Shown in pieces: positions 3,571 through 35,874 of a stretch of DNA of 64,000 bases. How positions within the stretch are numbered: the first letter of the stretch is position 1; every line of letters starts with the position of its first letter. A model generated the notes under the pieces. That model ran no database searches. It was given only the letters and a program-made list of their open reading frames with translations, and was not told the DNA's origin. The stretch covers positions 248,001-312,000 of the forward strand of contig OZ287703.1 in the NCBI GenBank assembly GCA_965649825.1, in the 5' to 3' direction. This DNA is from Penicillus capitatus. Its lineage: Eukaryota > Plantae > Chlorophyta. Position numbers and translations under genes: made by a program.

Positions 3571-6500
3571 CGAAATGATCGAGCTCCGGTTCGTCGACTG
3601 CCGTCGAACCGATTTTTTAGCTTGCCAATTTACATCAGTTTGAGATGTACGTGAATCTTATGATCGACCACAAGTCGAATTGTAAGCGCACTGTCCTTGT
3701 TGTAGAGTGTATCAATACCACCAAAACCGGCGAAAAGAACGATTTCTGGTTCAACTGCATACTGTGGTAAACTGATTTTGTTTTAACAGCCAGTTTTTTC
3801 GTATATGCACTATGAACGCCAACGGTGACAAATGGCAAATCGAAGAGATAGTCGAGGTTTCATCGAAAGCCAAGGACACAGTGATAAAACCTTCCCTAGA
3901 CTTTTCGAAGCTCCGCAGTTTCACAACCTTGTCGTTCAGACACACAGAAACGTAAACGACGACGAAGGCGTATCGTTTGCAAAGACTGTTGAAACGTCTG
4001 TAGTCTGGAATTACGGCCAGGTACGAACTAAAACGTCTTATCAAACGCACTAAGATCGTTCTCGGCCTCTCCCTAGTCATCTGCGCGAAGCTGGATAGCT
4101 GTCTTGTGACGCGCAGAATGTGTGCGGTACATAACCTCAAGCTGTACTCATTCTTTTTCAAAGGCCATGGAACATAAACTTGTTTTAGCAACTCGACAAC
4201 TGCAGATATATTAGCCGTTGTCACAACTTTCTAATAACGAGAGAACAAATTCCACGTGACGGAGATGTCTAAAATGACTTTACAACATAGATAGTTGAAT
4301 TCTTACAAACAGCGAAGCGATGCTTTTCAACAGTCACCCTCGTCGGAATAGAATGAGAACCCAGACGACTGGCCTTAATCGAGTTCTTCGGGTTCGATAT
4401 CGATCTGTTCGACTGCATTGATTGACTGAGTTTCGATTTGCTCGATTGTCGTCGATCGATTTCGGTCTGTCAGATATCAATTTGTTCGATTGCCAACAAT
4501 CGACGAAGTTTCGATTCGTCTGATGGCTGTGGATGAAGCTTCGAGACATTCGATCGCTATCGAACGACGAAGTCTCAATCGAGCGCATTCGGAATGAGAT
4601 CGGACAAGCTTGATGGCCATGTTATGACAGGTTTCGATAAATTGCGATTCGATCGTTTCTAATATCGCCGAATCTTAGCGACAACGATTGAATCAGCAGT
4701 CCCTGTGCTTTGTCTCAGTTCTTGTCGCGTCGATCGCAGAGATTTCTACGAAGAATGCTCTATCATCATCACTATCGGCAGGCGATCCGCGCACAGAGTC
4801 GGATATAAATCCACTTCAAAGCAGAAATCCATGCAACGTTCTCTTTTTTACCATTGGTATACATATGGTATCCCTACGCCTGACATATGTGCACATTCGT
4901 CTGCCTCAGCCGCCTTCTGCCATGTACCGTTTTTGGTCTCTGTCGATTCGAGCGATGGTTTGAGAACAATGCCGCCCCGCTGGACGGAACGACACGTACA
5001 TCTGGTAGATCAGACAGTGTCCATCATTGCTCCGCACTCTGAAAAGGAGGAGAACGTCGAGGTGCTTTTGAAGAGAGATAAGCTCATGCATTACCTGGAT
5101 ACTGTCAAGTACTCTGTGGAGGATCCGAAATCGCTGACGGAAACGTCTGGGTTGCTCTTGGCCAGTGTACTGCGTCTTTCTCCTGTAGAGGATGGATGCG
5201 GAGTAGTTGGATTCGGTCAGTACTTATCTGAGGAGCGCATTCCCGCGGAAGCGTAGACGGACTGATGTTCGTTTTGCGACATCGAGTGCATCTCGTCTCC
5301 AATGTCCCTGACAGCGACGTCCACGTCTGACTCCGCGTCATCATCATCCGCTTCGACCAGGCTGTCAGCGTCTTTCGTCCACTCGTGCAGTAGAAACAGC
5401 AGCACGAACGAAAGCGTCACTTTGGAGACGTCACTGAAGAAAGATGTTGCTCTACGGTCTGCTGCTTGCTCTGCTGACATGGGTGGCGACGCGTGTCCTC
5501 TGGCGACGTCTGCGATACGACCTCCACAAGATACCCACGCCACGCGGACTTCCTCTTTTGGGTCAGACGCTGCAAGTGATTAACACGATCCGAGGTAACG
5601 ACGAAGAGAGTTTTCTGCGTGCCCGCTGGATGCGCGAACTTGGATTTCCCAAGATCATGAGGGTGAGCGATTCGTTTCGAGAGATGGTTGATGGTTGAGT
5701 CAATGTATGGCAGGTGACCGTCTTCGGCTTGCCGCTTTTGTCGATAACCGACATGCGCTGCGCGAAATCCGTCGTGCTCTCTCGGACTGCACCGTTTGAT
5801 CGCACTACGCTCGTCCAAAGTACATTAAAAATCGTGAGCTCTCGTTTTTGCATTTGACGCGCCTAGAAGGTTCTTCTATAGCTCGTAGGCCTAGATTCTA
5901 AAGCGCTATTTCTATTTGGGTCGCCCTCTGTGTCACCTTATGTCAACGCCATACGCAAAGAGTATGCATCCGCCATGCAAACCAGCAACCTCAAGAAGAC
6001 GTGGCCTTCGTTACTGAAACTCCTGAACCAGCTGGTCATCATAATCGACGAACGCAGGATCGATGGACCCATAGATGTCCAGAGCCTTTTTGTTCAGCTC
6101 GCTCTGGACGTCATTGGTATCGTGGCCTTCGAAATGACGCTGGGAGGATTGGATGGCACTTGCAGCATACCAGAATTGTTGATCGAGGTCGGGCATATCC
6201 AGAAAGAACGACTACTCGATCCCATAGCAACAACATGTTACAAACTCTTCCCTCGCTTGGAAGGAGCGAGGAAGAGGCAGAGAGCGATCGACCGTCTGAG
6301 ACATGAGTACGAAAAGATCACTAAAGAGATGCTCAAGAGGGAAGCGCCCACAGACGGTTCTCGCCCACTCTGGTTCGGACTGCGAAGTTTTCAGCATCCA
6401 GAGACAAAAGAGCCTCTGTCTTACGAGAGTCTAAAAACCGAGCTTGGGGGCGTCATTCTCGCAGGGGCAGACACGACGGCACATCAGATCGCTTGGATCT

Positions 6501-7379
6501 TGGCGGCATTGGCCGAGCATCCCCGTGTCGTCGACAAGATCTTGGAGGAGCTCAGGGAACGAGGCCTCTACGGAGACGGATCAAGGGAGGTCGTGTTTGA
6601 AGATCTGGGAGAATTGGCCTACCTGACAGCCGTCATCAAGGAAGGCATGCGCTTTGTTGCCATAGTCACGAGGACCGTACCTCGTGTGGTTCCGCACGAC
6701 ATGACGCTGATGGGGTATCGAGTCCCGAAGGGCACTCTTGTGGTCATTCCGGGTAATCGTTGGATTGGAACGGAGAAGGAGTGGGGCGATCCCGAAGTCT
6801 TCCGACCGGAGCGCTGGTTGACCGGTGAAGACATGTCTCATGTGCACTACCTTGGATTCTCTTACGGCCCGAGGGACTGTGCCGGGCAGAAACTGGCCAT
6901 GATGGAGATGCGCTTGGTCCTCATCAAGCTGCTCGCCCAGTTCCGTTTCGAAACCGCCATACCATTCGATGAACTGATGCTTCACGGGAAGAACGGTTTG
7001 GCCATTGAATCGGCGATAGGGATCCCGCTCAAAGTGAGTCCGAGAACGGCGAGTTGAAACGTCATTGTTTTTGGCCGAAAGGCACGTCTTTTATTTTTGC
7101 ATTATTTGTTGCCATCAACGATTCTGTCGTTTGGCAATGTCATGGGCAATGCATGCCTGAAAGCACGTGCTGTGCGAACTCTCTTTAAACCATCGCAGTG
7201 AGAACCAGAACATCGTCCTCGCATATCGCAGGAATGGTCAACGATCGAACTAGTCGATCGCAATCGAAGACAGCTCGCGGAGATTTGGCGGCCGATAAGG
7301 GTCGAACGTGGTGAAACCTAGGCATCCGTGTACATCGTGGGCAGTGAAAATTGCTGATCGACGATATTAGCAACAGCCA
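3571..7379. repeat. Left arm of ~3.8 kb inverted segmental duplication (partner 32075-35874)
   Basis: Reverse-complement matches at both ends (TTCGTCGACTGCCGTCGAACCGATTTTTTAG near 3590 vs 35825-35855; the 7340-7379 segment vs 32075-32114). Paired ORFs throughout (3751-4224/35221-35733, 4334-4588/34857-35111, and the P450s). The outer boundary decays gradually. Confidence 0.95.
5444..7057 (+). CDS. Cytochrome P450, ER-anchored (copy A)
   Basis: N-terminal TM helix plus Pro-rich hinge (KIPTPRGLPLLG), I-helix AGADTT, K-helix EGMR, PERW and heme motif FSYGPRDCAG. Introns 5663-5713 and 5834-5881. Confidence 0.95.
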
Positions 7380-8548
7380 GATCTTCAGCGACTTGCTTGT
7401 CTAATGTATCGGATCCCAACTCGTGCGGGGATAGTTCTCGTTCGAAGGCTGCCGGTTTCCGATTGCATTGTCACTCTGTTTTCTCTCTGTTTCAGTCTAA
7501 CACCTTTACCTCTCAGTCATCGTGACAAAGCGATCGTCGTTCTTCGTGGATTTCGAAAGAGATGGACATTACCTGATCGAGACAATCACGTTCGGCAACA
7601 ATCTAGTGCTGTATCTCTCCGATGTCAACGACTCCCATCCACCACGGCAGAGTTGCGACCATAAAACATAGCGAATCGAGCGAAAGTCAGAGAACCGATT
7701 AAATTGTCGTAACATAACAAATGTGATGACAAGACTCGATAAGACGTTCGGAAACTTCCGCTTCTCTTTCGAACGACTGTCTGAGAAAGGGTTCTCATGA
7801 AGAGACACTTTCTTCAGAAATTCTGCGTTCCGAAGAACGCAGCGCGGCTTTGGATATGGTATTGATCGTGAGTCGTACCTCAGCTTAGCTTCATTGGTTG
7901 CGAAACTGCCCCAAGCGAAAGGATGACGTTACCAGATAGACTATATAGGCTAATGATGAAACTTCCGCTTCTGTTTTGTCGGGTTGGGAGTGTGGCGCAG
8001 AGCGCCTTCAAAAATTGTGAATACAGCTTTGTTAGCGACGAAGCTCGGTATTCGTTAGTACTGATATGCTTTGGAATTATTTACGCGTAGTCGTGGTCCT
8101 TTCTCGCAAATACTGAACACTTTTTAAAACAGCTGGTGTTTGTTTTCAAGAACCCCCTTTTATAATCTAACATGACGTTATGATTCTCGTCATGTTGTCG
8201 TCATGCTCATCGTCATGTTGTTGCTTCCTTGGTCGTTCGTTCTTCGGCCTGACAGTACTGTGGCGCAAAGCGCCTTTGAAAAAGGTTAATACGGCTTCCA
8301 TTTCCATCTAGCTCGACGCAGGCGGCCGTTCACCGTGCGGAGCTCCGCTCGATAACTGCCGATGCTACATGCATACACACACAGAGGATAGGGTAATGTG
8401 CGTACTTTGACTCCGGCAGTAGGTCGACAGTTCCTCTGGTAAACCTCAGAATCCTTCTTCGAGAAGAACAACGGAAAGAAAGGAATTACAGACGCTTCGA
8501 AACACGCGTTAAATAGTTCTGTGTTGTAGTAGATGCGTCTGATCCGAA

Positions 8549-8788
8549 GACGGATGGCGCCGCGGATGGCTCGAGATCCGACGGATGGCGCCGCGGATGG
8601 CTCGAGATCCGACGGATGGCGCCGCGGATGGCTCGAGATCCGACGGATGGCGCCGCGGATGGCTCGAGATCCGACGGATGGCGCCGCGGATGGCTCGAGA
8701 TCCGACGGATGGCGCCGCGGATGGCTCGAGATCCGACGGATGGCGCCGCGGATGGCTCGAGATCCGACGGATGGCGCCGCGGATGGCT
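8549..8788. repeat. Perfect tandem minisatellite, 31-bp unit GACGGATGGCGCCGCGGATGGCTCGAGATCC x7 plus a 23-bp partial
   Basis: Read directly from the sequence. No differences seen between units and no spacers. Confidence 0.97.
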
Positions 8789-9484
8789 GTCATATCAGGA
8801 AGCGGACAGCCTGTCCGGTCCGCGGGGCCGTAACCGTTGTCGTCTACCCGTCAATACCACATGCATGGCCGTTTCCAAGCGACTCTCTCCTTCAAGCAAC
8901 TAATCGACCACGCTGTCTTTCGTGCCTCTGCCTATTCTCTAACTTTCTGCACGATCTGATCCGGGTCCGTTAGCGACCGGTTCTCCCCAAGCCTTATCAA
9001 GAATACACGCTTTCTCCTAGATGTAGCTTCACGAGTGAAGAGATTTAGAGTGAAAGGATCTTTAGAGGACCCGCCCATGTCTGGCGAGGCCTTCGAACAC
9101 GACGATAGAGTGAGAACACTATTGTTCGTGTCACGGCCGAACAAAGACTTCGCATAGGAATAGATCGAGTCTTAACGGACTGCATCGTGTCTTCTATCTC
9201 ACCTTATTACGAGGCTTACACCTCACTGATAAGTTCAAAGCGCACGCGCATCACCTTCTATGGCACACCACATGTACAATATGCAGCACTCGGGACAACG
9301 ATCGGAGAACTGTGCGCTCTCTTCAGGCACATGAAGATAACTATCCTAGAGTGCACAAGTCATTCGATATGTTCGATTGCATCTGGCGTTCTCGATTGTT
9401 TGATCACTCAACAGGTTTCAATTACTCGCCACTGAGTTATTTACAGCATCGATTCGCACTGATAGCGCGACTGCGTTTTGCGCC

Positions 9485-10753
9485 ATGAGTCGACCACGAT
9501 CGTCGACAGCTGAGTTAGCTGTCTTGATCGACGGTTTCTATGATGACTTTGAATCGCATCCGGCCGAAGTGGACAGCCCTTCTCCGACGGCAGATGTTAA
9601 CGAATCGGCGGCGGACATGCACGCGACAGACGAGGCCTTGCCGCCAACACTGGATTCCGCTAGACAAGTGAACGAACTCATTCTGATTCGCGTCCCGACA
9701 CTGGAAAAAATGTTCTCAACAGATGAATCACGACCTCACAGAGACACATGAGAACCTTTGCCGTCGAGCAAAGATCGTTTTGCAGCAGCGTGCACAAGGA
9801 CGACAGCGACCGGTTTTCGATGCGTCCAAGCTAAACGAAGCAGAAGCACGTTTTAGAGCTTGCCTAAAGCTCCACCCACAGATCCAACAGGAAAAAGCAG
9901 ACAACGCAAACCGTTATCGCGAAAGAATCTGCGATCTTCAGAAAGCCTCTCCTCACATGCGGTGCTGTATCAAATGGTTATGACGTCTGTTGTAGTTGCG
10001 ACGTCAAGGAAGAACAGGTGTCAAAAATCCGAAAGACGTTCACACAGTTTTGCGTTGATATCGCACACAAGCACTTTGAGGACGATCGACCGGCGATGAA
10101 AGTACATACATAGTGTGGCAGTAAAGACGTGTTCGATCCGTGACCGGCCTCGGCAGACTGTGCAGACTTTGTTAGAAGAGGAGAAGACGGTTGCACAAGA
10201 GATGGAGGAGAAGAGACTGGAGAGCATCGCGATGGAGAGTCAGAGACGTCTTCTTGAGAAGAGGATGAATGACCGCGATTGCCTGGGCGATGGACTGCAT
10301 TTGATGGACTTTGAGCAACTGAAGATCGAAAACCAGACCCTTCACGAAAAGATCGATGAGCGTCATCATGAGCTCATGCAGTTGAAGAAGAAAACAGGCA
10401 CTGCTGTTCAGGTTTCTTGATCGTATGCGCGGATGAGCCACACGTGGATGGCCTCTTAATAGGTTTTGACACATGTTTGTGAGAAACGTCACTTCGTGGC
10501 CGCCGAGATCGACGCAAAGAAATCGCTATTGAATGATGATGATGAAATCATGTCTGAGCAGAAGTCGCGACTACAACAACGAAAGCTTTGTTGCACCTTG
10601 ATGCAGCGTCAAAAAACATATCTCGACCGCCATTGCTCAAAAGTGGTGGACAAAGCGCTTCTCGACGATATCCAGAGGCTTAAAACAATCAAAGTCGCAT
10701 TGCTAAAGCAGTTGGCCCATTTGCGGGACCAATTCACTTCTGTTCATGTATGA
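9485..10753 (+). CDS. CCDC96/CFAP184-like (DUF4201) ciliary coiled-coil protein
   Basis: Diagnostic GLHLMDFEQLKIENQTLHEKIDER...KKKTGTAVQ-VLTHV. Five exons can be joined through short GT-AG introns. Confidence 0.85.
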
Positions 10754-11560
10754 AATGCTGAACACATTTCTTTGATCCGCCACGCTTTCCAAATTTGTTT
10801 GTTTCTTGCTTTTTTAACTATCTAACATCTTTTCTAAGGACAGCAACAAATGAACGGTATTGACAGCTCAGATCCCTTTCCCGGTTTATCATTTGAGAAA
10901 AGTTCCGATCATTGTTAATTGTTGTTCGTCATACACAGCACATCCAGCAACGATGTCGAAGCTGCGACATCATTGCCAGACGCGTATGGAGTTAGTTGGT
11001 TGGGTGTTTAGCACAAAGCATTCTTGATCGACGAAATGTGAAAGAATGCTCAGGCCTGAGATATCGTGGAGTTATTAGGCAAGCTTAATCGAGGGCAAGC
11101 ATAATAAAACAGCATGAATAAGAATACGAAATCTCATCACGCCCTGGCAGAATATAAGGCAGAGGGCTTTGTTTCGATCAGAAATTGATACAAAGACAAA
11201 AATGACAAGAGCTTCCTTCATCAGTCATTGTGTGCAAGAGGTCTTGAGGACGGTGTTTAGAGCTAGGCTTGGTATGTCATCTAAACTCTCGTCTATATCA
11301 ATCCGCTCGCACAGAGTGACAATCAAACTACGAGAGACTGGAGCTCTCGCCCCGTCGTGGCAGCTATCTATCATCAGAGATGCCGAGACGGACAATCGCA
11401 AGGGGAAAATTCATCAATTCGAGGAAAGTAATGATAAGGAGTGTGACGGATACCAAAGAACAGAAATAAGGACTCAATCAATCACCGTGGAGATCTCTCT
11501 TTATTGTAGCTTGTTGTGCACACACATTTATTTTCTCTTAAGAAAAAGTTGTCTTCATCC

Positions 11561-12319
11561 TCATGTTTTCTGTCTGTACTTACTGAACCCAGACTTCGCG
11601 ATTGAGGCACCTATCAAGAAACACACGGCGGCAGCGGAGACAGCTCGTTTCACCCACTTCACTCTTCGACCTGCACTTTCCTGCCCTTCTGTCTCAGAAA
11701 CAGCGCTCGTGGTGGATGCACGCACCTATCCAACACCCGTCCGTCCGTCCATCAGATCGAACATCTCAAGCATGACGGCAGACATTACCTGCAACGTGCG
11801 TGCTGAACTAAAATTGACTTGAAATAGGTGTTCATTTGTGCGTGCGTCTCTGGTCGCATGCAACACGGGCAAGGATTGCACATAGTTGACCAAAGACTGC
11901 AAGATCTGTCCGTCCCTATCAGAGACATGGAGAAGCTCATCGACCCGCTGCTTCAACGCTTCGTTGATCGTTTGGTATATCTCAACAGACGACTTCATTA
12001 GTTTTACGTAATCTATCACACTTAACAGCTCACTCGGACTCTACAGGCGATAGACCTAACGGACGAGAATGATATGGACACTGCGCACCACTTCTGCTAC
12101 GGTCTCATCCGAGGCATCGGAAATCTCTTTGATAATTCTTCTAGCGGCATCGTTCCATTGGTCTAGCGCGAATTGCTGCCTCAAGATGCATTCCTCCTTC
12201 TGCTGGGTTGAAACGGCGTCGTCTGTTGGTGACCGTCGGCATCGATGCTGCAAGGCGCGGCGATGTGCTGAGGTCTCGACACTACGCGACGTGCATGCTC
12301 GCTCTGTATGGCCCAACAT
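11561..12319 (-). CDS. Hypothetical helical protein with a C-terminal hydrophobic segment (tail-anchored candidate)
   Basis: ORFs 12056-12319 and 11726-12019 can be joined. Intron 11726-11788 leads to a last exon ending ...AVSAAAVCFLIGASIAKSGFSKYRQKT*. No family recognised. Confidence 0.5.
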
Positions 12320-12466
12320 GCTGATATCGTCCCGTCGAAATCTGTGCTAATCTTTGTCTGTCTGTTGGTATATACAATTGAACGAACGACCCCGCAAACA
12401 GTACAAGCGAAAATCTCTCGATTCCAGTGAAATGCGACCATTTGACCCGCGTAGCGTACAGACCAT

Positions 12467-13460
12467 ATGTCGAGTCGAGTCGTTACACAGTGGCCATCGT
12501 TCTTTCCCGATCAACTCCAACGCGTCACTTCGCTATCGGCACTAAAATGTGCGAAAAGGTATCGACGCGAAGCCATGTATGTCCCATGTCTAGAACGGGA
12601 CGTGCCGACGGCGCATATCCCACCAGCACGGAGAGATGCAAGCAAACATCCCGTCTGCTTCTTGCATGGCTTCGATAGTTCGAGCCTCGATTTTCGAGAA
12701 TTGCTGCCGTACGTCGAAGACCGTTGCGAAGCCTGGGCCGTCGACCTCGTCGGTTGGGGATTCTCAGATCACTCCCTCTTCGTCAATGATCCATCGCTTC
12801 CCAATGGTCCCGATGTCAAGAAGGAGCATCTCTATGCATTCTGGAAACAGTCCATCGGACGACCGATGTGTGTCATGGGGGTCTCCTTGGGAGGCGCAGT
12901 GGCGATCGATTTTGCCTTGACCTATCCAGAAGCTGTCAGCACTCTTGTTCTGTCAGCTGCTCAGGGGTACACTGATGGTCTCGGAGTGCTCTCACGTGTC
13001 CCTTCCTTCGTGGCGAAGCTCGGTGTGCAGATCCTTCAAACTGAGGCACTAAGACGAGCGGCAAATACGATGGCATACCACAACAAAGAGATCGATATCG
13101 AACAGGCCATGACGATCGGCCGACTCCACACACTTTTGCCAGGTTTCATCCTCGAATACTATGTAAGGACGGGTGTTGTGTCGAGATATCTGTTTAGGGT
13201 GGATGGAAGCTTCGTTGGCTTTCATTCGGAGCGATGGCTACTCTTTGAGTGACAAGATTTCGTCCATCGATGTTCCGACACTCGTTGTCTGGGGAAGAGA
13301 GGATCGTGTGCTCGGGACAGCACCGGCTGAACGATTTGCATCGGATATCGCAGATGTACAGCTCCGATGGATCGAGGCCTGTGGTCATGCCGGACACATA
13401 GAGCAGTACCAACAGCTGGGCGATCATCTTTTGACATTTCTCGAAGAAAGGATTCCGTAA
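12467..13460 (+). CDS. Alpha/beta-fold hydrolase
   Basis: FLHGFDSS, AVDLVGWGFS, nucleophile elbow GVSLGG, VVWGREDRVL and CGHAGHIE. Intron 13143-13197. Confidence 0.92.
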
Positions 13461-13488
13461 AAGATTTTTGTTTTTGTTCGTTTCCTGA

Positions 13489-14400
13489 TCAATTTGGCAA
13501 AATGGGATTCTTAACATCGTTCCCGTATCTGCTCGCTGATCGCATTATACTGCTGACTAGAGCGATCGCTATACCAATCGAACTCAACAGAAAGGCTGCA
13601 GGGATCAGAATCCGAATCGAATCGATCGATGTCGACGTGTGCTGATCGGCAGCAATCGATCGATGCACTTCAAAGATCGGTTTGTCCTTGAGTAACGATT
13701 CGATTTTTGACGGGCTTCGAAAAGGAAACTTTCCCCATTGATATGCGCATGCAAGCTCATCGACCTGCACGAACAGGTGACGCACAAGGTTTTTCGTGTC
13801 GACGACGTGCATTGACAGAAATACGATCAAGGTAAGAGTCGATCTCACAGCTCCCTTCGCACCAACGTCCCTTATGGCGTCCGACACAGAGTTTCCACAT
13901 CAAGTCCTCTCGCTTTTGCGTCCGCATAAAGGGCGTCCGGCCGCAATCGATCTCGATCGTACGATTGTCGCCTTTGGCAATAAAGGTCACTCGAATGTCT
14001 TTGGTAAGATCTGTCTAAAACGGGCCTCAGATGCGCGTTAACAGGCAGCGATCTGAGTACGAGCGAATGGCCGTCGGTGCGTCGATCGAGCCGTTCCGTC
14101 GTCATCATCTTGCCCTGTTCGTTCGCGGTCAAAGGGTGAGTTGCTGGCGGAATGTTGTAAACGGTGTCGCCGTCGAGGACGACAACCCATTTCATGTTCT
14201 CATTCCCGCGTTGTTTCTGGAGAGGCTCTTCCCCGGCTGCATAGAGAAACACGAATGAATAGAGAGAGTTGTATGGAAAGTAAAAGGATGCTTGGATAGA
14301 TCGTCGCGAACGACAGAATCACGATCGAACCGATGAGAAAACCGATCGCTGCGCTCGGTGCGATATCCACCCATCGACAGCGATAGGAGGATGCATCCAT
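13489..14400 (-). CDS. Possible hypothetical membrane protein; gene model and strand uncertain
   Basis: Minus-strand ORF pieces have hydrophobic N- and C-terminal stretches and plausible short introns. Plus-strand donor-like sites also occur, so the call is unresolved. Confidence 0.3.
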
Positions 14401-14454
14401 CCGGTCTCGACACAACAATGCACCACACGTCGCGCATTTTGTCGAGATGACATC

Positions 14455-15194: not shown

Positions 15195-15263
15195 CGGGAA
15201 ATTGGAATCTTGAGAGCCGTTGAGTGTATGTTCTCTGCCAACAACAACAGATGGATGCCTTTC

Positions 15264-17015: not shown

Positions 17016-17236
17016 CTGCGATCAATCGGAAAAATGGAACCCTATCACCATCCTCTTAAACACCAAAGCTGCATCGTGGGAAAGTAAATCGGTAGTCTGG
17101 TGGATAACAGCCGGCCGAAATCCGCCGTTCACGAAAGGGATCGTACGTTGTTGTCGGTAAAATAGAGGAGAGGAAAAGTCGCTTCTCTTTCTGCAGAGAG
17201 CATCCGACAGATCTGCTGAATCGAGGATCTTTATTC

Positions 17237-22069: not shown

Positions 22070-25000
22070 TTACTCGCAGATGCTCTTTCTTCTTCGCCGT
22101 TCCTTCCTGTCTCGCACCACCGTGGCAATGGTGGATAGAATTCGGCTTTCGACATGGTCTGCAGTGGAGACGGGAAGGATCACGGGATCCGAGGGACCGG
22201 CGACAGCTTCCGAGACATCCTGCTTGAATGCCTCCGTCTCTACGACGGTGGCAATCTGCGTCTCTTCAATGCCACGTTCCATGCTCTCCCTCGGTTTGTA
22301 AGCAGACAACTGCGAATTGGTACCTCGTCCGCGACTGGCCCACTTCATATGCTTCTTTCCGGTGGGCGTCGACAGAACGACGGAATCTTTCGTCGAGGGC
22401 GGCGCGATGACAGACGACGGATTACGAATACCAGTGCCCGTAACGTCCGCCGTAGGACATCCACTCATCAGATCGGCACGTGCAGCCATGTAACGAATCG
22501 CCTGTTCCAGTTTGAATTTTTCTCTGCTCAGGATGGTGTACTGCTGTCGCATTTCCTCCAGTTCCGTCTTGAGTTTCAGGTGATACTGGATCTTCTGCTT
22601 AGAGTTGTGATGACCCAGCAATGATCCGGAAGACTGCATAAGACCTGTCACATCAGCATTGAGCTGCTCCGAGCGTTTGTGAAGGTGCAAGTTCTCTTCT
22701 TCCAACCGCTGGACCTCCAATCGCATGGCATCGCTGTTTCGCAGCTGATGACGATACTGCGCAGCGAGTTTTTGCGATTCGTTCACTTTCCGTTCAGCTT
22801 CGCGCAGAGCCTCTTTGAGAATATCGACTTCATCGAGATCTTCATCAGCAGATGCGTTGGTTCCCTCGAAGAATGCTAAACGGTCTTTCGCCTCGCGTAG
22901 CTGTTCTCGAAGCTGTTCGTTCTGCTTTCGAGTGGAAACCGCGACAGCTTGAGCGGCAGAGACTTCCGAGCGGAGCTCCTTGATCGATGTCGGCTCCAAT
23001 TTTAAGGCCCGAATCTGAGACTCGTATCGCTTCTTCTGCTGATGCAGCAAAGCACGCAGTTCGTTCTCCGTACCACTGGCAGCATGGCGATCCTCCTGTC
23101 CCGCATCACCCGCTCGTTCTTTCAGCTGCGCCAGTTCCCGTTCGAGTCTCTGGAGCTTCTTCTCACGCTCGGCGAGTTTTGCCTTGGCACTCGCGGCTGC
23201 TTGTTCCTGCTCGCGTGTGATTTCCGTATTCTCCTGTTTCAACGCTTTCACCTGCATCTGTAGATCCTGAACCAGTTGCGCCTTCTGTCTGGCCTCGTTC
23301 TCGGCCTTCACCAATCGAATCTCTGTCTTCTGACTCGCACCTTTGGCCGTCTCCGTACTGCGCGCAGCATTATTCATCTCTGATTGCATCTCGCGAATCT
23401 CTTCTTCGCGTTCCTCGAGCGCCTTCTGCACGGAAGCGAGTCTCTTGGCCAGTTGACCTGAATTCTTCTCCGTATTCGTGTGTGTCGTGTCTAACTGAGA
23501 TTCGAGTAAGCGTTTTTCGGCTCCGAGTTTGGCGAGTTCTTGCGTCTGTGAGGCAACGGTGGACTGTGCATTCTTGTAGGCTGTCTTACTTCGAGCCAGC
23601 TTCTCCTCCACTTCCGCTTTCTGCTTCAGCGTCGACTCCACTGTCTCCTCTGCCTTCTTCCTGCTCTCCACTGCCTTGGCCAATCGGCTCTCCACTTTGG
23701 ACAACTCCTTTCGCATTTCCGCTGCCGCTTCTTCTTTCTTCTTGCCGTGCTGCTTCGATTGCGAAAGATCCTTCTTGCATGACTCAAGCGTTGTCCGAAG
23801 ACTATCGCGTTCTTTCCCGAGTTTATTCAATTGTTCCTGCAGAACGGATAATGTACTACCCTTCTCTCCCACATTGTTTCCCAGTTTCTGGACCTTCTGT
23901 TGAAGTCCCTGGACGGCGGCATGACGCTCAGCGAGTTCGACCTTCGTGGCCTCCAATTCCGATTGCAACTCAGCCACTGTCTGAGCTCGCGTCGCACCTT
24001 CGGACTCATGTACTTCAGCTGCCTTGACGAGATCCTCATTCGTTGCTTGGAGTTCTGCAGCCTCCACTGTCTTTTCGCCCAACTGCAGACGCACCATCTT
24101 CAGTTCGTTCTGCATGTTGGCACGGATCTCCGTGTCCTCTGCCATCTGGGCCTGAGCTGCATCTAGCTGCTGGCTATAGGAGTTGATGGTGTTCTCCTGT
24201 TCGGCTAAGGATCGTCGCAGCGATTTTTCTTCTTTCTTCTGACGCTCGAGTTCACCGACCTTGGCTTTCTTCTCCTTCAAAACCGTCGCGACTTTGTTGC
24301 TCAAATGTTTCAATTCGCTAGCCTACAACACACAACAACCTGTATCACCACCACCCATCGCTACTAAGCAATTATCCAACTTGGGTTTCGGTCAGCTTTT
24401 CGAGCTCGGTGAATTTGGTTTGACGGTCCGTTGCCACCTGCGTGAATTTTTCGAGTTTCTTGCCAAGATCTTGCTCCTCTTCGTCATTAAATTCTCCCCC
24501 GAATGACTTGGTGATGCTCTCCACTCTGCTTTGCAGCATGAGCACGTCTCTATCTTTGGATTGAAGATTCTCTTTCAAGGCAAACATCGTCGCTTCCGCA
24601 TCCCTTAGCGAGTCTTGTGAGGTTTGTTGATCGTTCTCCATTTTTGTGAGTTTGGTTTCAAGCTCTTGCACAAACTGATCACGGTTTCTCAACTCTGCCT
24701 CTGCAACAGAAAGCTCTTCCTGCAGCGACGCCAGCTGTTTTGCTTTTTGGTCGTTTTCCTCGCGCATGTTCCTGAGTTCCTCTTCCAACTCTGCCTTCTC
24801 CTGGAGAATAACCTCAAGTCGTTCCTTCAGTTCCTGAATCTCAGCACGAAGCTTCGCAACAAGCTCCTCTGATTCTGTTTCGCGCTCCGCGGCAACGGTG
24901 AGCTCGGCTTTCAGGACAATGATCTGTGCATAGTTTTCCGAGATGAGACGCTCCGTTGCGGATTTACTGGCACTCAATTCCTCTTCGAGAGCAGCCAGTT

Positions 25001-26044
25001 GTTCCTGTTGGACGTTACTCAGTGCCTTCATGTCGGCAAATTGTGTGTTAAGGGAGTCCTGCGATTCGGATTTCCGCGAGGCGGACGATTCGGCCGCGGC
25101 TAGCCGCTTCTTGAGTGCCTGAATTTCTTTTCTTTGCCTATCTTGATCTTCTGCGTGGTCTTCTTCCATATTCACCATCTGCTTCTCTAATTCCGATAGT
25201 CGCTGTTTCGCATCGCTCACTTTCGCTTCGGCAAACTTACGACTCTCTTCAGATTTTTTGACTCTCATGTTCATGTTGGCTGCAGCAACACACAACCTGT
25301 CACATCAACACCGTAACCAACAACGTCCTCACACACCAAGCTCATTCTCGAGTTTCTTTTTGTCGGTTTGGATTTTGGTGTGTTCCCGCTGCGACTGTGC
25401 AGTGAGTGCCTTCTGCTCGAGCAGCTTGTTCTTGATATCGCGCAGCTCAGTCTACAGTCAGACAACGAAGCATCTTAGTATAAGAGTGAGAAAAGGGCAG
25501 CAACGAACGTCGAGTTCGGCTCTTCGCTCTGGACTCATGCCGGATTCGCGGATGACTTGTTGAAGCTCCTACATGACATTCGGCCATCATCGCGTCTGAC
25601 GCCTAGCCGTTGCGAAGATACCATGATTTTGGCTTTGGAAATGCGGAGCTCCGTTTCCAAGTCTTTGATTCTGTTTGTCGTCCAGTCGGTCGTGCGCGAA
25701 CCCGGTCGCGACGGAATCCGTCTCCTTGGTGACGTGGACATACCGCCCGAGCCATCTACCGCACCACACGGCAGACCCTTAAATGCCGTCTGAACCGTCC
25801 GGCGTGCATCGTCTTACCCTCGTTGACGCTGCTCGAAAATCGGCCAGAGCCCTTAAAACCTGACCGCGGGTCTACCTTGTACCCGACGTCACCGAGGTGG
25901 TTTGGGTCGTAGTCTCCTGGACCTACAACGCCCGACGTGTCCATGCGCTGTCACAATGATGCCCGCCGCGTCGTGGCCTAGGCAAGATGCACCTGGCGAT
26001 GGTAAGTGTGGCCGAAAACGTTCGCTTTTGTCGCGGCCGAACAT
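22070..26044 (-). CDS. Long coiled-coil protein with HMMR/RHAMM-like N- and C-terminal motifs and no motor domain
   Basis: Spliced N-terminus MFGRDKSERFRPHLPSP-GPGDYDP...GFKGSGRF, more than 1000 aa of E/K/Q/L heptads, and C-terminal LLGHHNSKQKIQYHLKLKTEL. Confidence 0.8.
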
Positions 26045-26440
26045 GTTATTTCTTGTCTTTCTCTCTACACGTGAAGCGAAAGCGGTTGATGACTACTTGA
26101 AAAACGCAGACGTGCTGTAAGTCAACCAGTATTTTTTACGGTAAGAATAATCACCAAGAACGGCGAAAAGCAGCTAAGCGTATAATAATTGGCAGTACGC
26201 CAAATGCACCGCCGTCGTCTTCTCCCAACCGTCCTTTTGCTAAAAAAGCACAGTTTTGGCAGCGAGGGGTCGAGATCACCAGAGAATGCAGATGCCGAGT
26301 GTACAGACGGCAGCTGTCGATCGTTTATTCGAAACGTGTCTTCATTCCACCCTCTCTTCCGCATTCATTCCATCCAGTTCATGTCAGAAGAAGAGCATCA
26401 TCTTCAGTCATGTCCTGGCAGCGGAGTGCATGCTTGTTAT

Positions 26441-26617
26441 TGGATGGATAGATGGCGGATGGATGGATGGATGGTGGAGATCAAACGATAACAACAAGAC
26501 CAATGACATCTATAGCAATGATATCAATAATGAGTAGTACTTAGGACATCGAACTCGATCGCACGAGAAGGAACGGGACAGTTCAAACATACAACAACAA
26601 CAACAACAACAACAACA
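26441..26617. repeat. Microsatellites: imperfect (GATG)n at 26441-26474 and (ACA)9 at 26591-26617
   Basis: Read directly from the sequence. Confidence 0.9.
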
Positions 26618-26947
26618 TATAGACACAACAAGCACGCCGCACTCAGAACGACCGATCGACCGACCATTAACAATTGAGAACAACGATCCTGTGAAGCGCC
26701 TGAGCTTCGTCGTACAAAAATGAAATTGCACACAAACAGATCGCAAAAAGGTCCACGACAGAGTAGGAAAACGACGTTTGTGATCCACGACACAGAAAAG
26801 GAAAAAACAAGCGCATCAGTACGTTGTCTACTCTTATTATTGCACGGATATACTACTAGTATAATGAAATCTACATCTCGCTTCTAGGATGCGTGTGATT
26901 AAGGAAGACAATTGCGGTCTGCTTGCCTGCTTGCCTGCCTGTGGTGC

Positions 26948-28840
26948 TTACTCGCTCGCAGCTGCTCGCCAAGATTCTAGACTCTTCGAGACTCTCATGC
27001 TCAGAGCCAGTTTGATGAAAGTGTCTGGCGGCGGAAGCGATGTCGGTACATCTGTGGACTGCATGATGACCAGGGCATCGTCTTCCCTTGATTGCATCAG
27101 CCTGGATTCCATACATTTCATAATAGCCAGAGCAACTCTCAATGACATTTTCCATCCTTCCAGCAGGAAGACATCCCAGACGCGCAATACATGTTGGAAA
27201 GGTAGTACATAGCAGAAGAGAGCCATCCACCAACTGACGGTAAAATCGGCAAGGGGGAGATCCTCAGTACCCGCTTCTATCCGGCGCCTCAGATGAGGCA
27301 TCTTGTCTCCAAGCACGTGCATCAACTTGGACTTGAGCTCTTGGGTCAGAGGGAAACCTTCGAGGTATAGACGACGGCAGCCAATGGGTTCTCCTGCGGT
27401 GGAAGGACGCGGGAAGTTAAGTGCTTCTTCGCGCATCATTGCAGCAAACGTCCAAAATGCATCCTCTTCAGACATCACCAAAAGCAAAGTGCCGAAGACC
27501 GGTCCCATACTTTGAACATACGCCGCCTACAGTCTCCCACTCACGATGCCGAGATCGATCAGTTCGACGAGGACCTCAGGGTCGTAAAGGGAGTAGGCTT
27601 TGAGGCAATTAAACAGCGCTTCCTTTCCAGGACCTCCCTGCTCCACAAAGAAGATGTGATGCGGATAGGTCCTGTCGAGATCCTTCTTTATTTCATCTTC
27701 CCATCTGCTCCACGATCGAACAAGTCGTGCATACACTCCGGGGTTCTCTTGTTGCAGTGCTCTTCCACCTATAGAAGGGGAAGGAAGATGCAGAGGGTGC
27801 AGCAAGCAGCATGAGACGGTTGACCTGTGAGAAGAGGCCAGACTCGGTAACGCCAGTCTTTTGGTATCCCTTTACGCGCCCGTTTCTTGATCAATTTCGA
27901 ATGCACTTGACAGATCTCTTCCCAATTTTCTTCTGCATTGTGTAACATGACTCTCCATTTTGCTTGGCGCCGAACAGAACGGCGATCGTTTGGCGGTTCA
28001 TAATGAACAAAAGGAGACAACCGTTCTACTAAGAACACACAGACATGCATGCCCATCCCTTTCGATAATGCAGCAACGACAGTCCTCACCGACGTCTCCG
28101 TCGACGTAAAGAAATCCATAGCCATCCACATCGCTTCGAGCGGATGTTTGTATGGAGCTCTCTGAATAACAGGTCACACCAGAATATTGAGTCGTGTCCA
28201 TATCGCTCCGGATGCGACCTGCCGCAGTCGTCCGATGACTGGGTGATGTCAGCGGATTCTCTGAAGAGGTACTGACATCCAAGAAAGGCATCTCCTGCGT
28301 ACTCGCGCTGCTTCCTCTGGCCGTGGTCTGCCGTTCCCTCGACCCGCCCATACCTGTGGAGGTGGACGGTCCTGAAACGTGGAGGAGGCATCCTGGCGAA
28401 AAGTCGGATGTCATCCATGCCGCTTCATTTGTTCTCTTGGGAATTTCGCGACACCAGGTTGGCGAGATGACAGAGTTCGACTCGACGAGTGCGTTCGTTG
28501 GATGCAAATCTCTTATTGCTGCAGCATCATCTTCGAGGAAAGAATGCAAGAAACTATCAGAATCGAAAGAGGGCACGACGGATGGCCCAAATGAACAAGC
28601 ACTGTCATCGCCAGTGATGATAAGGCACTCTCCAGTACTGCCGAGAACACCACTGCGTTTATGATCCAAGGAGATTTCCGCAGTTTCTGTGGCATGCACC
28701 AAATCTGAAGCTGAATCCAGCAACCCATCGATGCATCCCATCATCCCACTCAATAGAGACTTCTGACTATCGCCCTGGAAACGCACACATCTACAGAGGC
28801 AGAAGAGAATGCGGATGGGACGGACGGGTTGTGTGCTCAT
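26948..28840 (-). CDS. TBC-domain Rab GTPase-activating protein
   Basis: DGYGF, RARKGIPKDWRYRVWPLL, IKKDLDRTYP (arginine finger), LKAYSLYDPE-VGYVQSM and EEDAFW. Several short introns. Confidence 0.92.
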
Positions 28841-31019: not shown

Positions 31020-31091
31020 GTGGATCGTTATCGAACAGATCGATAGGTGGATCGTTATCGAACAGATCGATAGATCGATCGATCGATCGAT
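31020..31091. repeat. Two tandem 27-bp copies of GTGGATCGTTATCGAACAGATCGATAG followed by an (ATCG)n run
   Basis: Read directly from the sequence. Confidence 0.9.
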
Positions 31092-32074
31092 TACGCAAAA
31101 CATCTGAAATCGATTTGCCTACCAAGATCCACAGTTCATACGTCAATCAGAATGATGGACTCTGCACAATCTGTAGATTAGAGACAGATTATCAAGATGT
31201 TGTTTGCCATGAAGTGCGATAAAATGCGCTACTAGCACTTTCGGCATCGGTACTTTTCATTCTCGAATGTCTATGGATCGACAGACAGAGTCGTAGAATT
31301 CTCTCTTCGCTTAGTCATTCTTGTCGGGTAACTATCTTCGTTCTTTCAGATTGGACGAAATGTTTGAGAGTCGTACATAAAATGTTTACCTTTTCTAGCC
31401 CGCTTGCATTAACAAAGCTCTGGCCATGAAGGGAGAGAGAGATCGCCGCCATCGTCAGCAACAGAACTCACGATTTCGACTGCTAAACATTAGACGGATG
31501 AACGGCAGCACTCTAGTGTCATTCGGTCGAGCGCGTTTGGCATCGGCCATTGGTTCCGCGTCGTGAATTCTTCAAAAGACCAAAACGTTTTTACACCTAA
31601 TTCATCATGAAGTCTGTATTTATCGCTTCGATCGCAGCATCCCATCAGTTTTGCCTGTCGCATCGGACTGTCATCTTTCTGATCCCTCGTCACCAATGTG
31701 ACATCATGGTTCCGTACCATGAGGAGTTCACACTAGTGAAATCATCAACGAAAAGGTACCAGCGAACGGCAATGCGCACCTTGGGCAAAAAAGCGTCTGC
31801 CCAGACGGAAAGAATCGACAGCAAAACAAATAACTAACATACGTTCCAGCCACGAAACAACGACTTGGGTAAGACAGCTCATTCTAGCAGATTTGCAGAC
31901 AAAACAATTCACGGCAGCACCAAACTTATACGAATCTTTCGACCGTGAGCACTAGAAAGAATTACCCCAGTAATCTCCGCCGATGCATCGCGAGGATCGA
32001 AGAGCAGTCATCGCTTCGTAACTCAGCTCTCCATCAACGCTTAATCGCGTCGTCGTCTTCACCTACCTCGCGAA

Positions 32075-35000
32075 TGGCTGCTGCTAATATCATCGATCAG
32101 CAATTTTCACTGCCCACGATGTACACGGATGCCTAGGTTTCACCACGTTCGACCCTTATCGGCTGCCGAATCTCCGCGAGCTGTCTTCGATTGCGGTCGA
32201 CTAGTCCGATTACTGATGATTCCTGCGATGTGAGAAGGACGATGTTCTGGTTCTCACTGCGATGGTTTAAAAGGAGTTCGCACAGCACATGCTTTCAGGC
32301 ATTCATTGCCCATGACATTGCCAAACGACAGAATCGTTGATGGCAACAAATAATGCTAAAATAAAAGACATGCCTTTCGGCCAAAAACAATGACGTTTCA
32401 ACTCGCCGTTCTCGGACTCACTTTGAGCGGGATCCCTATCGCCGATTCAATGACTACACCGTTCGTCCCACTGAGCATCAGTTCATCGAACGGTATGACG
32501 GTTTCGAAACAAAACTGACTGAGCATCTTGATGAGGACCAAGCGCATCTCCATCATGGCCAGTCTCTGCCCGGAACAGTCCCTCGGGCCGTAAGAGAATC
32601 CAAGGTAGTGCACATGGGACATGTCTTCATCGGTCAACCAGCGCTCCGGTCGGAAGACTTCGGGATCGCCCCACTCCTTCTCCGTTCCAATCCAACGAGT
32701 ACCGGGAACGACCACAAGAGTGCCCTTCGGGACTCGATACCCCATCAGCGTCATGTCGTGCGGAACCACACGAGGCATTATCCCCATGACGATGTAGGCA
32801 ATCCGCATGCCTTCCTTAATGACGGCTGTTAGGTACGGCAATTCTCCCAGATCTTCGAAGACGACCTCTCTTGCGCCGTCTCCATAGAGTCCTCGTTCCC
32901 TCAACTCCTCCAAGATCTTGTCAACGACACGGGGATGCTCGGCTAGAATGGAGAAGAGCCATGCGAGCTGATGCGCCGAGGTGTCTGTTCCAGCGAGGAT
33001 GACAAGCGCAACCTCGGCTCTGAGGCTATCATATGACATCGGCATTTCTGTCTCTGAATGGTAACGGTCTCGTAATCCGAACCAGAGTGGGCGAGAACCG
33101 TCTGTCGGCGCTTCTCTCTGCAGAATCTCCTTAGTGATCTTGTCGTATTCGTGCGTCAGACGATCGATCGCTCTCTGCCTCTTCCGTGCGCCTTCCAAGC
33201 GAGGGAAGAGTTTGTGGCATGTCGTTGTGATGGGATCGGATAGTCGTTCCTTGAAAATGTGGCCGACCTCGATCAACAACTCTGGTATGTTGCAGGTGCC
33301 ATCCAATCCTCCCAGCGTCATTTCGAACGCAACGGCTCCAATGACGTCCAGAGCAAACCGAACAAGGAGGTGCTGGAGGTCTATGCCTTCTTTGGTTCCG
33401 TGTTCTTCAATTTTGACGGCCAGTTGGTTGGTGGCGTTCATTAACGACGGCCACACCTTCTTGAGATTGCTAGTTTGCATGGCGGATGCATATTCCTTGC
33501 GTATGGCCTTGACATAAGGAGACACTCTTCTCTCTCCCGCCAGATGTGGAGCTTTGGAACTCAGCCCTAAGAGCTATTACACGTTCTTGCCATTGCTGAA
33601 AGCAAACAACGGGCTCTCACGATTCTTGTCGCTCTTTCGGGGGCTTTAAAGCGAGGGAACGCTTCAGACCTTGAGAGTACGATGGATTTCACACAGCGCA
33701 TGTCGGTTATCGTCAGAATCGGCGAGCCGAAGACTGCCACCTGCCAGAAACTGCATAAACCATCTAGAGAAGCGATCAGTTTACTCTGAAGATTTTGGGA
33801 AATCCGAGTTGGCGCATCCAGCGTGCACGCATAAAACATTCTTCTTCGTTATTTCGGATTATGTTAATCATGTCGAGCGTCTGTCCCAAAAGAGGATATC
33901 CGCGCGGCGTGGGTATCTTGTGAAGGTCATATCGCAGACGTCGCCAGAGGACACGCGTCGCCGCCCATGTCAGCAGCGCAAGCAGCAGACCGTAGACCAA
34001 CATCTTTCTTCAGCGACGTCTCCAAAGTGACGCTTTCGTTCGTGCTGCTGTTTCTACTGCACGAGTGGACGAAAGACGCTGACAGCCTGGTCGAAGCGGA
34101 TTATGATGACGCGGAGTCAGACGTGGACGTCGCTGTCAGGGACATTGGAGACGAGATGCACTCGATGTCGCAAAATGAACATCAGTCCGCCTGCGCTTCC
34201 GCGGGAATGCGCTCCTCAGATAAGTACTGACCGAATCCCATCCCTCTGCAGCTATCCTCTCTAGGAGAAAGACGCAGTACACTGGCCAAGAGCAACCCAG
34301 ACGCTGCCGTCAGCGATTTCAGATCCTCCACAGAGTACTTGACAGTATCCAGGTAATGCATGAGCTTATCTCTCTTCAAAAGCACCTCGACGTTCTCCTC
34401 CTTTTCAGAGTGCGGAGCAATGATGGACACTGTCTGATCTACCAGATGTACGTGTCGTTCCGTCCAGCGGCGGCATTGTTCTCAAACCATCGCTCGAATC
34501 GACAGAGACCAAAAACCGGTACATGGCAGAAGGCGGCTGAGGCAGACGAGTGTGCTCATATGTCAGGCGTAGGGACACCCGACGTATACTGATTGCGGGA
34601 AAGAGAACGTTGCACGGATGCAGAGCTGCAAGTGATTTAGATCCGACTCTGTGCGCGGATCGCCTGCCGATAGTGATGATGATAGAGCATTCTTCGTAGA
34701 AATCTCTGCAATCGACGCGACAAGAACTGAGACAAAGCTCGGGGGCTGCTGATTCAATCGTTGTCGCTAAGATTCGACGATATTCGAAACGATTGGATCG
34801 CAATTTATCGAAACCTGTTATAACATGGCAATCAAGCTTGTCCGATCTCATTCCGAATGCGCTCGATTGAGACTTCGTCGTTCGATAGCGATCGAATGTC
34901 TCGAAGCTTCATCCATAGCCATCAGACGAATCGAAACTTCGTCGATTGTTGGCAATCGAACAAATTGATATCTGACAGACCGAAATCGATCGACGACAAT

Positions 35001-35874
35001 CGAGCAAATCGAAACTCAGTCAATCAATGCAGTCGAACAGATCGATATCGAACCCGAAGAACTCGATTAAGGCCAGTCGTCTGGGGTCTCATTCTATTCC
35101 GACGAGGGTGACTGTTGAAAAGCATCGCTTCGCTGTTTGTAAGAATTCAACTATCTATGTTGTAAAGTCATTTTAGACATCTCCGTCACGTGGAATTTGT
35201 TCTCTCGTTATTAGAAAGTTGTGACAACGGCTAATTTATCTGTAGTTGTCGAGTTGCTAAAACAAGTTTATGTTCCATGGCCTTTGAAAAAGAATGAGTA
35301 CAGCTTGAGGTTATGTACCGCACACATTCTGCGCGTCACAAGACAGCTATCCAGCTTCGCGCAGATGACTAGGGAGAGGCCGAGAACGATCTTAGTGCGT
35401 TTGATAAGACGTTTTAGTTCGTACCTGGCCGTAATTCCAGACTACAGACGTTTCAACAGTCTTTGCAAACGATACGCCTTCGTCGTCGTTTACGTTTTTG
35501 TGTGTCTGAACGACAAGGTTGTGAGACTGCGGAGCTTCGAAAAGTCTAGGGAAGGTTTTATCACTGTGTCCTTGGCTTTCGATGAAACCTCGGCTATCTC
35601 TTCGATTTGCCATTTGTCACCGTTGGCGTTCATAGTGCATATACGAAAAAACTGGCTGTTAAAACAAAATCAGTTTACCACAGTATGCAGTTGTACCAGA
35701 AATCGTTCTTTTCGCCGGTTTTGGTGGTATTGATACACTCTACAACAAGGACATCACGCTTACAATTCGACTTGTGGTCGATCATTAGGTCCAGCTGCGT
35801 CTCAAACTGAAGGAAATTGGCACGCTAAAAAATCGGTTCGACGGCAGTCGACGAATTATAGATCGCTCATTTCG
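32075..35874. repeat. Right arm of ~3.8 kb inverted segmental duplication (partner 3571-7379)
   Basis: Reverse complement of the left arm. Noncoding tracts are near-identical and interrupted by diverged blocks. Confidence 0.95.
32398..34003 (-). CDS. Cytochrome P450, ER-anchored (copy B, paralog of 5444-7057)
   Basis: Same three-exon structure as copy A. AGTDTS, EGMR, PERW and FSYGPRDCSG are present and the ORF is intact. Confidence 0.95.

Follow-up and report, generated by a model that had tools for sequence, protein, structure and literature searches.

The window analysed here, 64,000 nucleotides (nt) of Penicillus capitatus DNA, contains two cytochrome P450 genes, P450-A and P450-B, each carried by one of two inverted repeats (arm A and arm B) that enclose a spacer of 24,695 bp. 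Comparison with a related genome places the block between the arms in the opposite orientation there, and the identity profile of the arms points to repeated exchange of sequence between them. The locus is probably best understood as a passive flip/flop region, subject to general homologous recombination and belonging to a class for which yeast and humans provide examples, rather than as a demonstrated enzyme switch.

The two arms (3571-7379 and 32075-35874) were recovered in a repeat search as six collinear inverted pairs that join into both, and blastn places them in a single alignment of 3,818 columns at 89.7% identity, far above chance. From the outside inward, each arm comprises about 1.3 kb of non-coding DNA, a methyltransferase stump, about 0.2 kb of intergenic sequence, the P450 gene and about 0.3 kb of 3′ sequence. 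Both P450 genes are transcribed inward, that is, convergently, and their GT-AG introns measure 44-51 nt. The predicted proteins match PF00067 of Pfam (E values of 1e-58 for P450-A and 1e-60 for P450-B) and share the motifs EGMR (ExxR; amino acids (aa) 366-369), PERW (aa 422-425) and the heme-binding FSYGPRDC(A/S)G (aa 439-448). They align end to end with full-length homologues, including Caulerpa lentillifera g363.t1, with gap-free exon junctions, and are 78% identical to each other in amino acids and 83% in nucleotides. Alignment and gene models thus confirm the architecture put forward in the original prediction, which was made from the sequence of the window: two inverted arms of about 3.8 kb, each with an intact three-exon P450, around 24.7 kb. 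The same prediction allowed for a second arm created by assembly or by haplotype duplication. The arm proved to be real, since a fold-back, assembly or haplotype duplicate is ruled out by the 10% divergence of the arms, by the 24.7 kb of unique spacer and by the recurrence of the two-arm structure in two independent contigs of the related genome.

The orientation of the window was read from one 495-kb contig (ctg340373_30x_l, 30x coverage) of the ENA metagenome assembly ERZ25074695. The related genome is represented by ctg303800 (sister genome, G2) and by a near-identical haplotype or strain, ctg303791 (G2p), both from ENA assembly ERZ26696514; we refer to the genome of the window as G1. Two convergent P450 genes are present in both G2 and G2p, 26.5 kb apart in the former and about as far apart in the latter, and the outer flanks are those of the window. 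The order of sequences met on reading inward from each flank of the sister loci is given in Table 1. Between the parts read on the two sides lie 11.5 kb (G2) and 11.8 kb (G2p), where the window has 11.5 and 11.7 kb. Judged from this collinearity, the inner block (at least 9449-30467) is opposite in orientation to that of G2 and G2p, with flanks and arms in place, and at least one arm-associated inversion has taken place since G1 split from the sister genome. The original prediction had argued that the intervening DNA can invert and had proposed a comparison of synteny with relatives, and the reversed 9449-30467 of the sister agrees with it. One of the two breakpoint intervals, 31518-35533, is essentially arm B. 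It is the tighter of the two because a short segment, W, adjoins the same end of the inner block in both genomes and therefore travels with the block. The other, 3430-9449, comprises arm A and 2 kb of genome-specific DNA.

An outgroup, G3, is available as two Logan contigs (SRR33785045 and SRR33785046; loci L008, L009 and L011), and the P450 gene is absent from this locus at both junctions. In G3 the left flank is followed by 16796 to 9735, next by 36089 to 38581 and finally by 17234 to 28774. The outgroup shares with G2 the position of the CCDC113 end of the block near the flank with the BTB and P5C reductase genes. On this one shared gene adjacency, in an outgroup that is otherwise rearranged, the G2 orientation is probably ancestral and the flip would belong to the lineage of the window. 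The half of the block running from CobW to RabGAP lies in G3 beyond the P5C-reductase flank, which shows that the neighbourhood has been rearranged more than once. A scan of JGI metagenomes for more genomes, made with the FAST-like protein of the left flank, returned no match, as did a full-text literature search for the four accessions; the other relatives of the coiled-coil gene of the spacer lie on contigs too short for synteny.

Identity between the arms is strongly mosaic. The non-coding upstream part at 3643-4643 is about 99% identical, 4942-5540 varies between 90 and 98% per 100 nt, and identity falls to 56-87% between 5540 and 6700 (from the end of exon 1 to the middle of exon 3), with a synonymous divergence (dS) of 0.4-0.7, before rising again to 88-98% at the 3′ end (6700-7340). 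Overall, the outermost 1.9 kb of the arms is about 97% identical. The longest perfect runs between A and B (254, 169, 149, 149 and 100 nt) all lie upstream of the ATG. Within the coding sequence, perfect runs of at least 40 nt measure 82, 68, 66 and 42 nt and are confined to 6680-7084 (aa 380 to the stop codon), and none of that length is present in 5433-6679. The claim that near-identical tracts lie both inside and outside the coding region therefore holds for the outside, where they are mostly upstream of the ATG; inside, they reach just 66-82 nt and sit near the 3′ end.

The upstream non-coding DNA is 97-100% identical from arm to arm, yet between G1 and G2 it is 62-77% identical or unalignable. 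Because the same DNA differs this much between genomes, constraint cannot explain its near-identity within one genome, for which recent gene conversion can account. The coding sequences follow a similar pattern. Exon-3 dS within G1 is 0.38 for A-B, 0.43 for A-C1 and 0.33 for B-C1, where C1 is a third P450 paralog described below, and within G2 it is 0.19 for L-R and 0.18 for L-C2, the three corresponding copies; between the P450s of G1 and G2 it reaches 0.51-0.77. For the single-copy FAST-like gene, dS is 0.39 between G1 and G2 and 0.0 between G2 and G2p. All P450 copies cluster by genome despite their conserved positions. Nearest relatives also switch along the gene: at 6256-6553, B and C1 are 91-93% identical, where A and B share 75-83%. 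The most informative comparison lies within the sister assembly. The flanks of G2 and G2p are 98.8-99.3% identical, and their right arms are just 75-82% identical in segments where the two arms of G2 itself are 99-100% identical; the upstream part of the right arm (L004 7948-9507 against L005 8228-9793) is 89% identical overall and locally 75-82%. This contrast implies that arm-to-arm homogenisation has occurred since these haplotypes diverged. These comparisons indicate that the arms evolve in concert and that sequence exchange between them occurs, and the mosaic of identity, together with paralogs that evolve in concert, supports the exchange between arms that the original prediction presupposed.

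The composition of the arms points to their source. Each contains a Methyltransf_33 (EgtD-like) domain that is incomplete, covering only aa 263-367 of 378, and is thus a truncated relic, which is found in the sister genome as well. From about 4870 inward, the arms are 74-82% identical to loci in which an intact methyltransferase gene lies directly upstream of the third P450 paralog (L002, L003 and L006), and the homology begins inside the 3′ end of the methyltransferase. Because it begins there, the arms are read as copies of a truncated methyltransferase-P450 cassette. In G1 the third paralog, C1 (protein P0003, locus L003), is on the contig that also contains the window, about 46 kb left of the latter, in the company of three methyltransferase genes. 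Arm B is probably the original of the two arms, on account of its outer edge, which is collinear with the sister's right flank: loci L004 and L005 run unbroken from window position 41853 to 35533, 340 nt into the arm. The outer arm segment, in which coding signal is absent, has two to three stretches of about 100-250 nt that can be aligned to the sister genome, and the rest cannot. A transposable element or recombinase as the source of the arms was considered and set aside: the outer 1.3 kb has no Pfam matches, and a copied methyltransferase-P450 cassette is the better explanation.

The third-paralog cluster contains two to three intact Methyltransf_33 genes and adjoins alpha-amylase, PGM and PP2C genes (L003 in the window's genome; L006 and L002 in the sister). 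These genes possibly form a small biosynthetic cluster. Its distance from the left flank is about 46 kb in the window's genome, about 56 kb in G2 and about 122 kb in G2p, and its orientation with respect to that flank is inverted in G2 but direct in the other two; the paralog region of G2p also has a different left context, with a breakpoint near L002 6762 and L006 6688. The varying orientation and context imply further rearrangements of the paralog region, one of them between near-identical haplotypes. An open reading frame with an Integrase_H2C2 domain (retroelement integrase) at L003 20413-20946, about 10 kb from the third paralog, is the sole mobile-element signal near any P450 copy.

We propose that a methyltransferase 3′ stump and its P450 were copied as a cassette from the methyltransferase-P450 cluster about 46 kb away, so as to stand, inverted, at both ends of a block of about 25 kb and 8-10 genes. 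General homologous recombination would since have kept exchanging sequence between the arms, and also with the third paralog. Its non-crossover outcomes (gene conversion) homogenise the arms over their non-coding upstream 1.9 kb and at the 3′ end, as the alignments show, and a crossover within the arms would invert the block. The central P450 bodies presumably stay diverged because selection, low identity or both limit conversion there. Flipping would be rare and without designed function, and the mosaicism of the P450s would stem mainly from conversion tracts among the three paralogs rather than from reciprocal half-gene swaps.

Four points weigh against this explanation. The interval on the side of arm A includes 2 kb of genome-specific DNA, so that a breakpoint just outside the arm is possible. 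The crossover point is unmappable: the informative sites, at which A differs from B and L from R, divide into 12 of flank type and 6 of inner type with no spatial switch, and this count tells nothing about the crossover because concerted evolution erases orthology. The orientation of the window comes from a single metagenome contig, in which a mis-join within the near-identical outer tract of 1-1.9 kb would mimic an inversion. Finally, both orientations were not seen within one species among the one genome of the window's species and the two G2 haplotypes, which share one orientation.

The closest analogue is a flip/flop region on chromosome XIV of Saccharomyces, where, as described by Salzberg et al. 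2022 (PMC9731477), a 24-kb block of 15 genes lies between inverted repeats of 4 kb; these consist of paralogous genes and undergo continual homogenisation, and the orientation is stable on laboratory timescales and has been repeatedly re-inverted in evolution. The two regions are alike in the size of the block (roughly 24 kb, about 10-15 genes) and of the repeats (roughly 4 kb), in paralogous coding repeats, in homogenisation within genomes, in an orientation that differs between related genomes and in relying on general homologous recombination with no dedicated recombinase. They differ in that both orientations occur in yeast within a species and recurrently, whereas here there is one difference between two species-level genomes; in that the yeast arms are almost identical, whereas here the gene bodies are 17% diverged in nucleotides and the flanks homogenised; and in their cargo and host, P450s in a green alga as opposed to sporulation genes. 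Human inversions between inverted segmental duplications, such as FLNA-EMD at Xq28 (PMC3961182; bioRxiv 10.1101/2020.04.20.051185), are alike in that non-allelic homologous recombination between inverted repeats flips a unique segment and the arms evolve in concert. Unlike the present locus, the human cases have been genotyped in populations, with recurrence measured, and their repeats are usually not two diverging functional enzymes.

The original prediction went further and saw in the locus a candidate recombinational switch, with up to four enzymes arising from crossovers in exon 3. Taken as an active switch, the block would flip often, perhaps differently from nucleus to nucleus of a coenocyte, and the P450s produced would be functionally distinct. 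The mechanics hold up, and some features do suit such a switch. The genes are convergent and of the same length and phase, so that any crossover within them would give intact chimeras; exchange between the arms is demonstrably both recent and still under way, with one inversion on record; a siphonous alga is the probable host; and P450-A and P450-B differ at aa 98-130, 283-322, 370-378 and 481-487, where substrate-recognition regions are expected from motif landmarks. We nonetheless regard an active switch as highly improbable. Neither a recombinase nor an orientation-dependent promoter accompanies the arms: recombinase-type Pfam domains are absent from the called genes in the roughly 10 kb that flank each P450 on both sides and from the ten longest open reading frames scanned (window 1984-28840), in agreement with the earlier remark that no site-specific recombinase is visible. 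Each P450 keeps its upstream 1.9 kb, the presumptive promoter, within its own arm, and so flipping need not change expression. Most crossovers would shift entire genes and give no chimera because the longest identical tracts lie upstream of the genes. The 66-82-nt tracts of the coding sequence fall in aa 380-504, where a crossover would swap the C-terminal part only, no more than about 17 residues, with the putative substrate-recognition site (SRS) 6 at aa 481-487 among them. For the predicted chimeras, in which SRS1 comes from one copy and SRS4-6 from its counterpart, the crossover would have to fall in 5930-6410, at 74-86% identity and with no perfect tract reaching 40 nt between the SRS1 and SRS4 regions, which makes these chimeras the least likely products. 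Nothing points to a switch in the sense of frequent, regulated or phenotype-changing flips. Each P450 reading frame occurs on a single contig of its assembly, the contig was assembled through both arms, and both G2 haplotypes show one orientation. The ratio of nonsynonymous to synonymous divergence (dN/dS) is below 1 throughout, and the orientation of the yeast analogue is stable on laboratory timescales (PMC9731477). Flips at an appreciable frequency within individuals of a siphonous, multinucleate alga, leaving the nuclei of one thallus with different orientations and, through in-gene crossovers or conversion tracts, with different P450 repertoires, are likewise highly improbable. If they did occur, they would amount to a somatic, recombination-based diversification of a small P450 family (A, B and the copy in the cluster), perhaps with a link to the neighbouring EgtD-like methyltransferase cluster.

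Two further readings concern the inversion itself. The difference in orientation might be an assembly artefact, in which a wrong path was taken through the outer tracts of a real inverted repeat and the true genome is oriented like G2. The genome of the window is represented by a single contig, identity reaches about 99% in the outermost 1 kb and about 97% over the outermost 1.9 kb, and a path switch there would give exactly the observed map, including the position of W next to the body of P450-B. Arms of 3.8 kb that are 10% diverged are spanned by ordinary long reads, however, and we take the assembly to be a long-read one from the length and naming of its contig, which is continuous over 495 kb. 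In addition, the genome-specific segment X (with its U4 gene and tandem array) and arm boundaries unlike those of G2 speak for real structural divergence at the junctions, and we consider an artefact unlikely. Alternatively, the repeats could be the product rather than the cause of the inversion, through staggered breaks, replication-based inversion-duplication or second copies acquired independently in each lineage. In Drosophila, the staggered-break model describes inversions that end in inverted duplications; the outgroup has no P450 at either junction, and the arm boundaries differ, with arms of 3.8 kb and no W in arm A of G1 as against 4.15 kb with W in both arms of G2. Set against this, the two genomes agree in having an arm at each of the two flank junctions, and the homology of the left flank ends at the same base (window 3430, L007 11441). 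Because the junctions are shared, the most parsimonious history has the arms arise once, ahead of the split, with one flip afterwards; an independent origin would require two duplications into the same site, and exchange between the arms is directly evidenced. An origin of the repeats in the inversion event is accordingly rated quite unlikely, and a passive flip/flop region remains the explanation that we favour.

Other known systems resemble the locus in part. The nearest real example of a switch driven by homologous recombination is the mating-type locus (MAT) of Ogataea polymorpha, where about 19 kb is inverted by homologous recombination between inverted repeats with no site-specific recombinase (PMC4238957, PMC5720833). 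That system is induced by starvation, and its read-out depends on proximity to a centromere, which keeps one of the MAT loci silent; no inducing pathway, position effect or heterogeneity within the population is evident at the present locus. Bacterial hsdS and shufflon loci and the flip-flop of the plastid inverted repeat share with the window the arrangement of inverted repeats around an invertible segment. The bacterial loci use a dedicated site-specific recombinase, for which there is no such gene here, and short sites with frequent half-gene reassortment; the plastid repeat is organellar with essentially identical copies, whereas this locus is nuclear. Hybrid P450 genes also arise by recombination between paralogs, as in CYP11B1/CYP11B2, CYP2D6/CYP2D7 and CYP21A2/CYP21A1P. 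Ectopic recombination or gene conversion produces mosaics there, as it does among A, B and C1 and among L, R and C2. Those repeats are direct and yield deletions and duplications, whereas inverted arms would yield a balanced inversion with two reciprocal chimeras.

The closest relatives of the two P450s in the PDB are CYP11A1, CYP3A and CYP46A1, at E values of only about 1e-24, and the closest named proteins are from Caulerpa lentillifera (37% aa identity) and Ostreobium quekettii (30%). The lineage is greatly expanded, with dozens of paralogs of 40-50% identity on a few contigs of 1.3-4.1 Mb in ENA assemblies. Amino acid differences between P450-A and P450-B are concentrated at aa 98-130, 155-186, 283-322, 370-378 and 481-487, clusters that appear to overlap the usual substrate-recognition regions as placed from the AGxDTT, ExxR and Cys landmarks. 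Across regions of the two genes, dN/dS ranges from 0.13 to 0.76 and never exceeds 1, and positive selection as the cause of the divergent core is not demonstrated by these values.

The genes of the spacer encode CCDC113-like, alpha/beta hydrolase, MFS, CobW, Branch glycosyltransferase, CCDC39-like coiled-coil and RabGAP-TBC proteins, besides unnamed open reading frames and a U4 small nuclear RNA (snRNA); the 8-10 genes counted make the predicted figure of about 10 a reasonable one. The coordinates of these and the other features are collected in Table 1.

Table 1 Features of the P450 inverted-repeat locus and order of the corresponding sister loci (positions refer to the window)
Feature	Position	Strand	Description
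Left flank	1-3430	+	FAST/RESC6-like gene at 1984-3261; collinear with the left-side P450 of the sister, 87.5% over 3.4 kb
Arm A	3571-7379	+	Outer non-coding part, methyltransferase relic, P450-A, 3′ region
Outer arm segment	3571-4869		1.3 kb; mostly 98-100% identical between arms, 86-92% at both ends
Methyltransf_33 (EgtD-like) relic	4887-5163; twin 34559-34248 in arm B	+	3′ third of the gene (aa 263-356 of 378); tblastn with the L003 methyltransferase
P450-A	Exons 5444-5662, 5714-5833, 5882-7057	+	504 aa, no stops
C-terminal near-identical coding part	6680-7084	+	Sole coding part with perfect tracts of 66-82 nt
Spacer	7380-32074		24,695 bp, about 8-10 genes; 9449-30467 inverted relative to the sister genome
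Segment X	7380-9370		Adjoins arm A; genome-specific; U4 snRNA-like gene and 31-nt tandem array
Segment W	31080-31518	-	Single-copy here, adjoins arm B; part of both arms in the sister
Arm B	32075-35874	-	89.7% identical (reverse complement) to arm A; outer edge collinear with the sister right flank
P450-B	Exons 34003-33785, 33740-33621, 33573-32398	-	504 aa, no stops
Right flank	35875-41853		BTB, P5C reductase, 859-aa open reading frame; collinear with the right-side P450 of the sister
FAST-like (left) side of the sister (L007, L010), from outside inward	1-3430, arm, W (31518-31080), then 30467 to 28258		Inner block reversed
P5C-reductase (right) side of the sister (L005, L004), from outside inward	41853 to 35533, arm, W, then 9449 to 16792		Inner block forward

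Segment X is regarded as genome-specific because, in a search against the inner arm extensions of the sister, its last 230 nt alone matched. The U4 snRNA match within it (7800-7924, minus strand; Rfam RF00015) is full length, scores 49.1 bits against a gathering score of 46 and lies about 420 nt inside the inner end of arm A; sought as a synteny marker for X in seven related loci, the snRNA was found in none. Segment X also contains a perfect 31-nt tandem array at 8549-8788 (8487-8819 in its wider extent), with 7.7 copies of the unit GACGGATGGCGCCGCGGATGGCTCGAGATCC at 100% matches, which a prokaryote-style gene caller turned into an open reading frame. A 27-nt tandem repeat of 2.3 copies (31020-31081) borders segment W where the match to the arm extension of the sister breaks off. 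The strong strand asymmetry of 22000-26000 (AT skew of -0.24 to -0.29, GC skew of -0.11) coincides with the CCDC39-like gene on the minus strand (open reading frames 22070-24313 and 24372-25295) and is an effect of codon usage on composition, not a structural one.

The neighbouring genes are of nuclear type (FAST/RESC6-like, MFS, CobW, RabGAP, MCM and DEAD-box helicase). Together with spliceosomal introns and the U4 snRNA, they indicate that the locus is nuclear and rule out a plastid or bacterial origin. Two flanking or inner proteins are 50-51% identical in amino acids to those of Caulerpa lentillifera, and identity to Bryopsis sp. stands at 35%. Caulerpa lentillifera, Bryopsis and Ostreobium being the best named relatives, the source is probably a green alga of the Bryopsidales, allied to Caulerpa, and the coenocytic organism guessed at in the original prediction is plausible.

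The locus offers a natural green-algal example in which inverted paralogous genes are both substrates of concerted evolution and hinges of a balanced inversion, and it adds an instance of a flip/flop region from outside yeasts and animals. Were both orientations to occur in one thallus, the locus would become a rare instance of somatic structural mosaicism between nuclei that share one coenocyte. For annotators, it carries the warning that both P450s are mosaics, which should not be taken for plain orthologues of the genes at the corresponding positions. Ectopic recombination is here reshaping a lineage-specific P450 family, and on very short timescales, since two near-identical haplotypes already differ.

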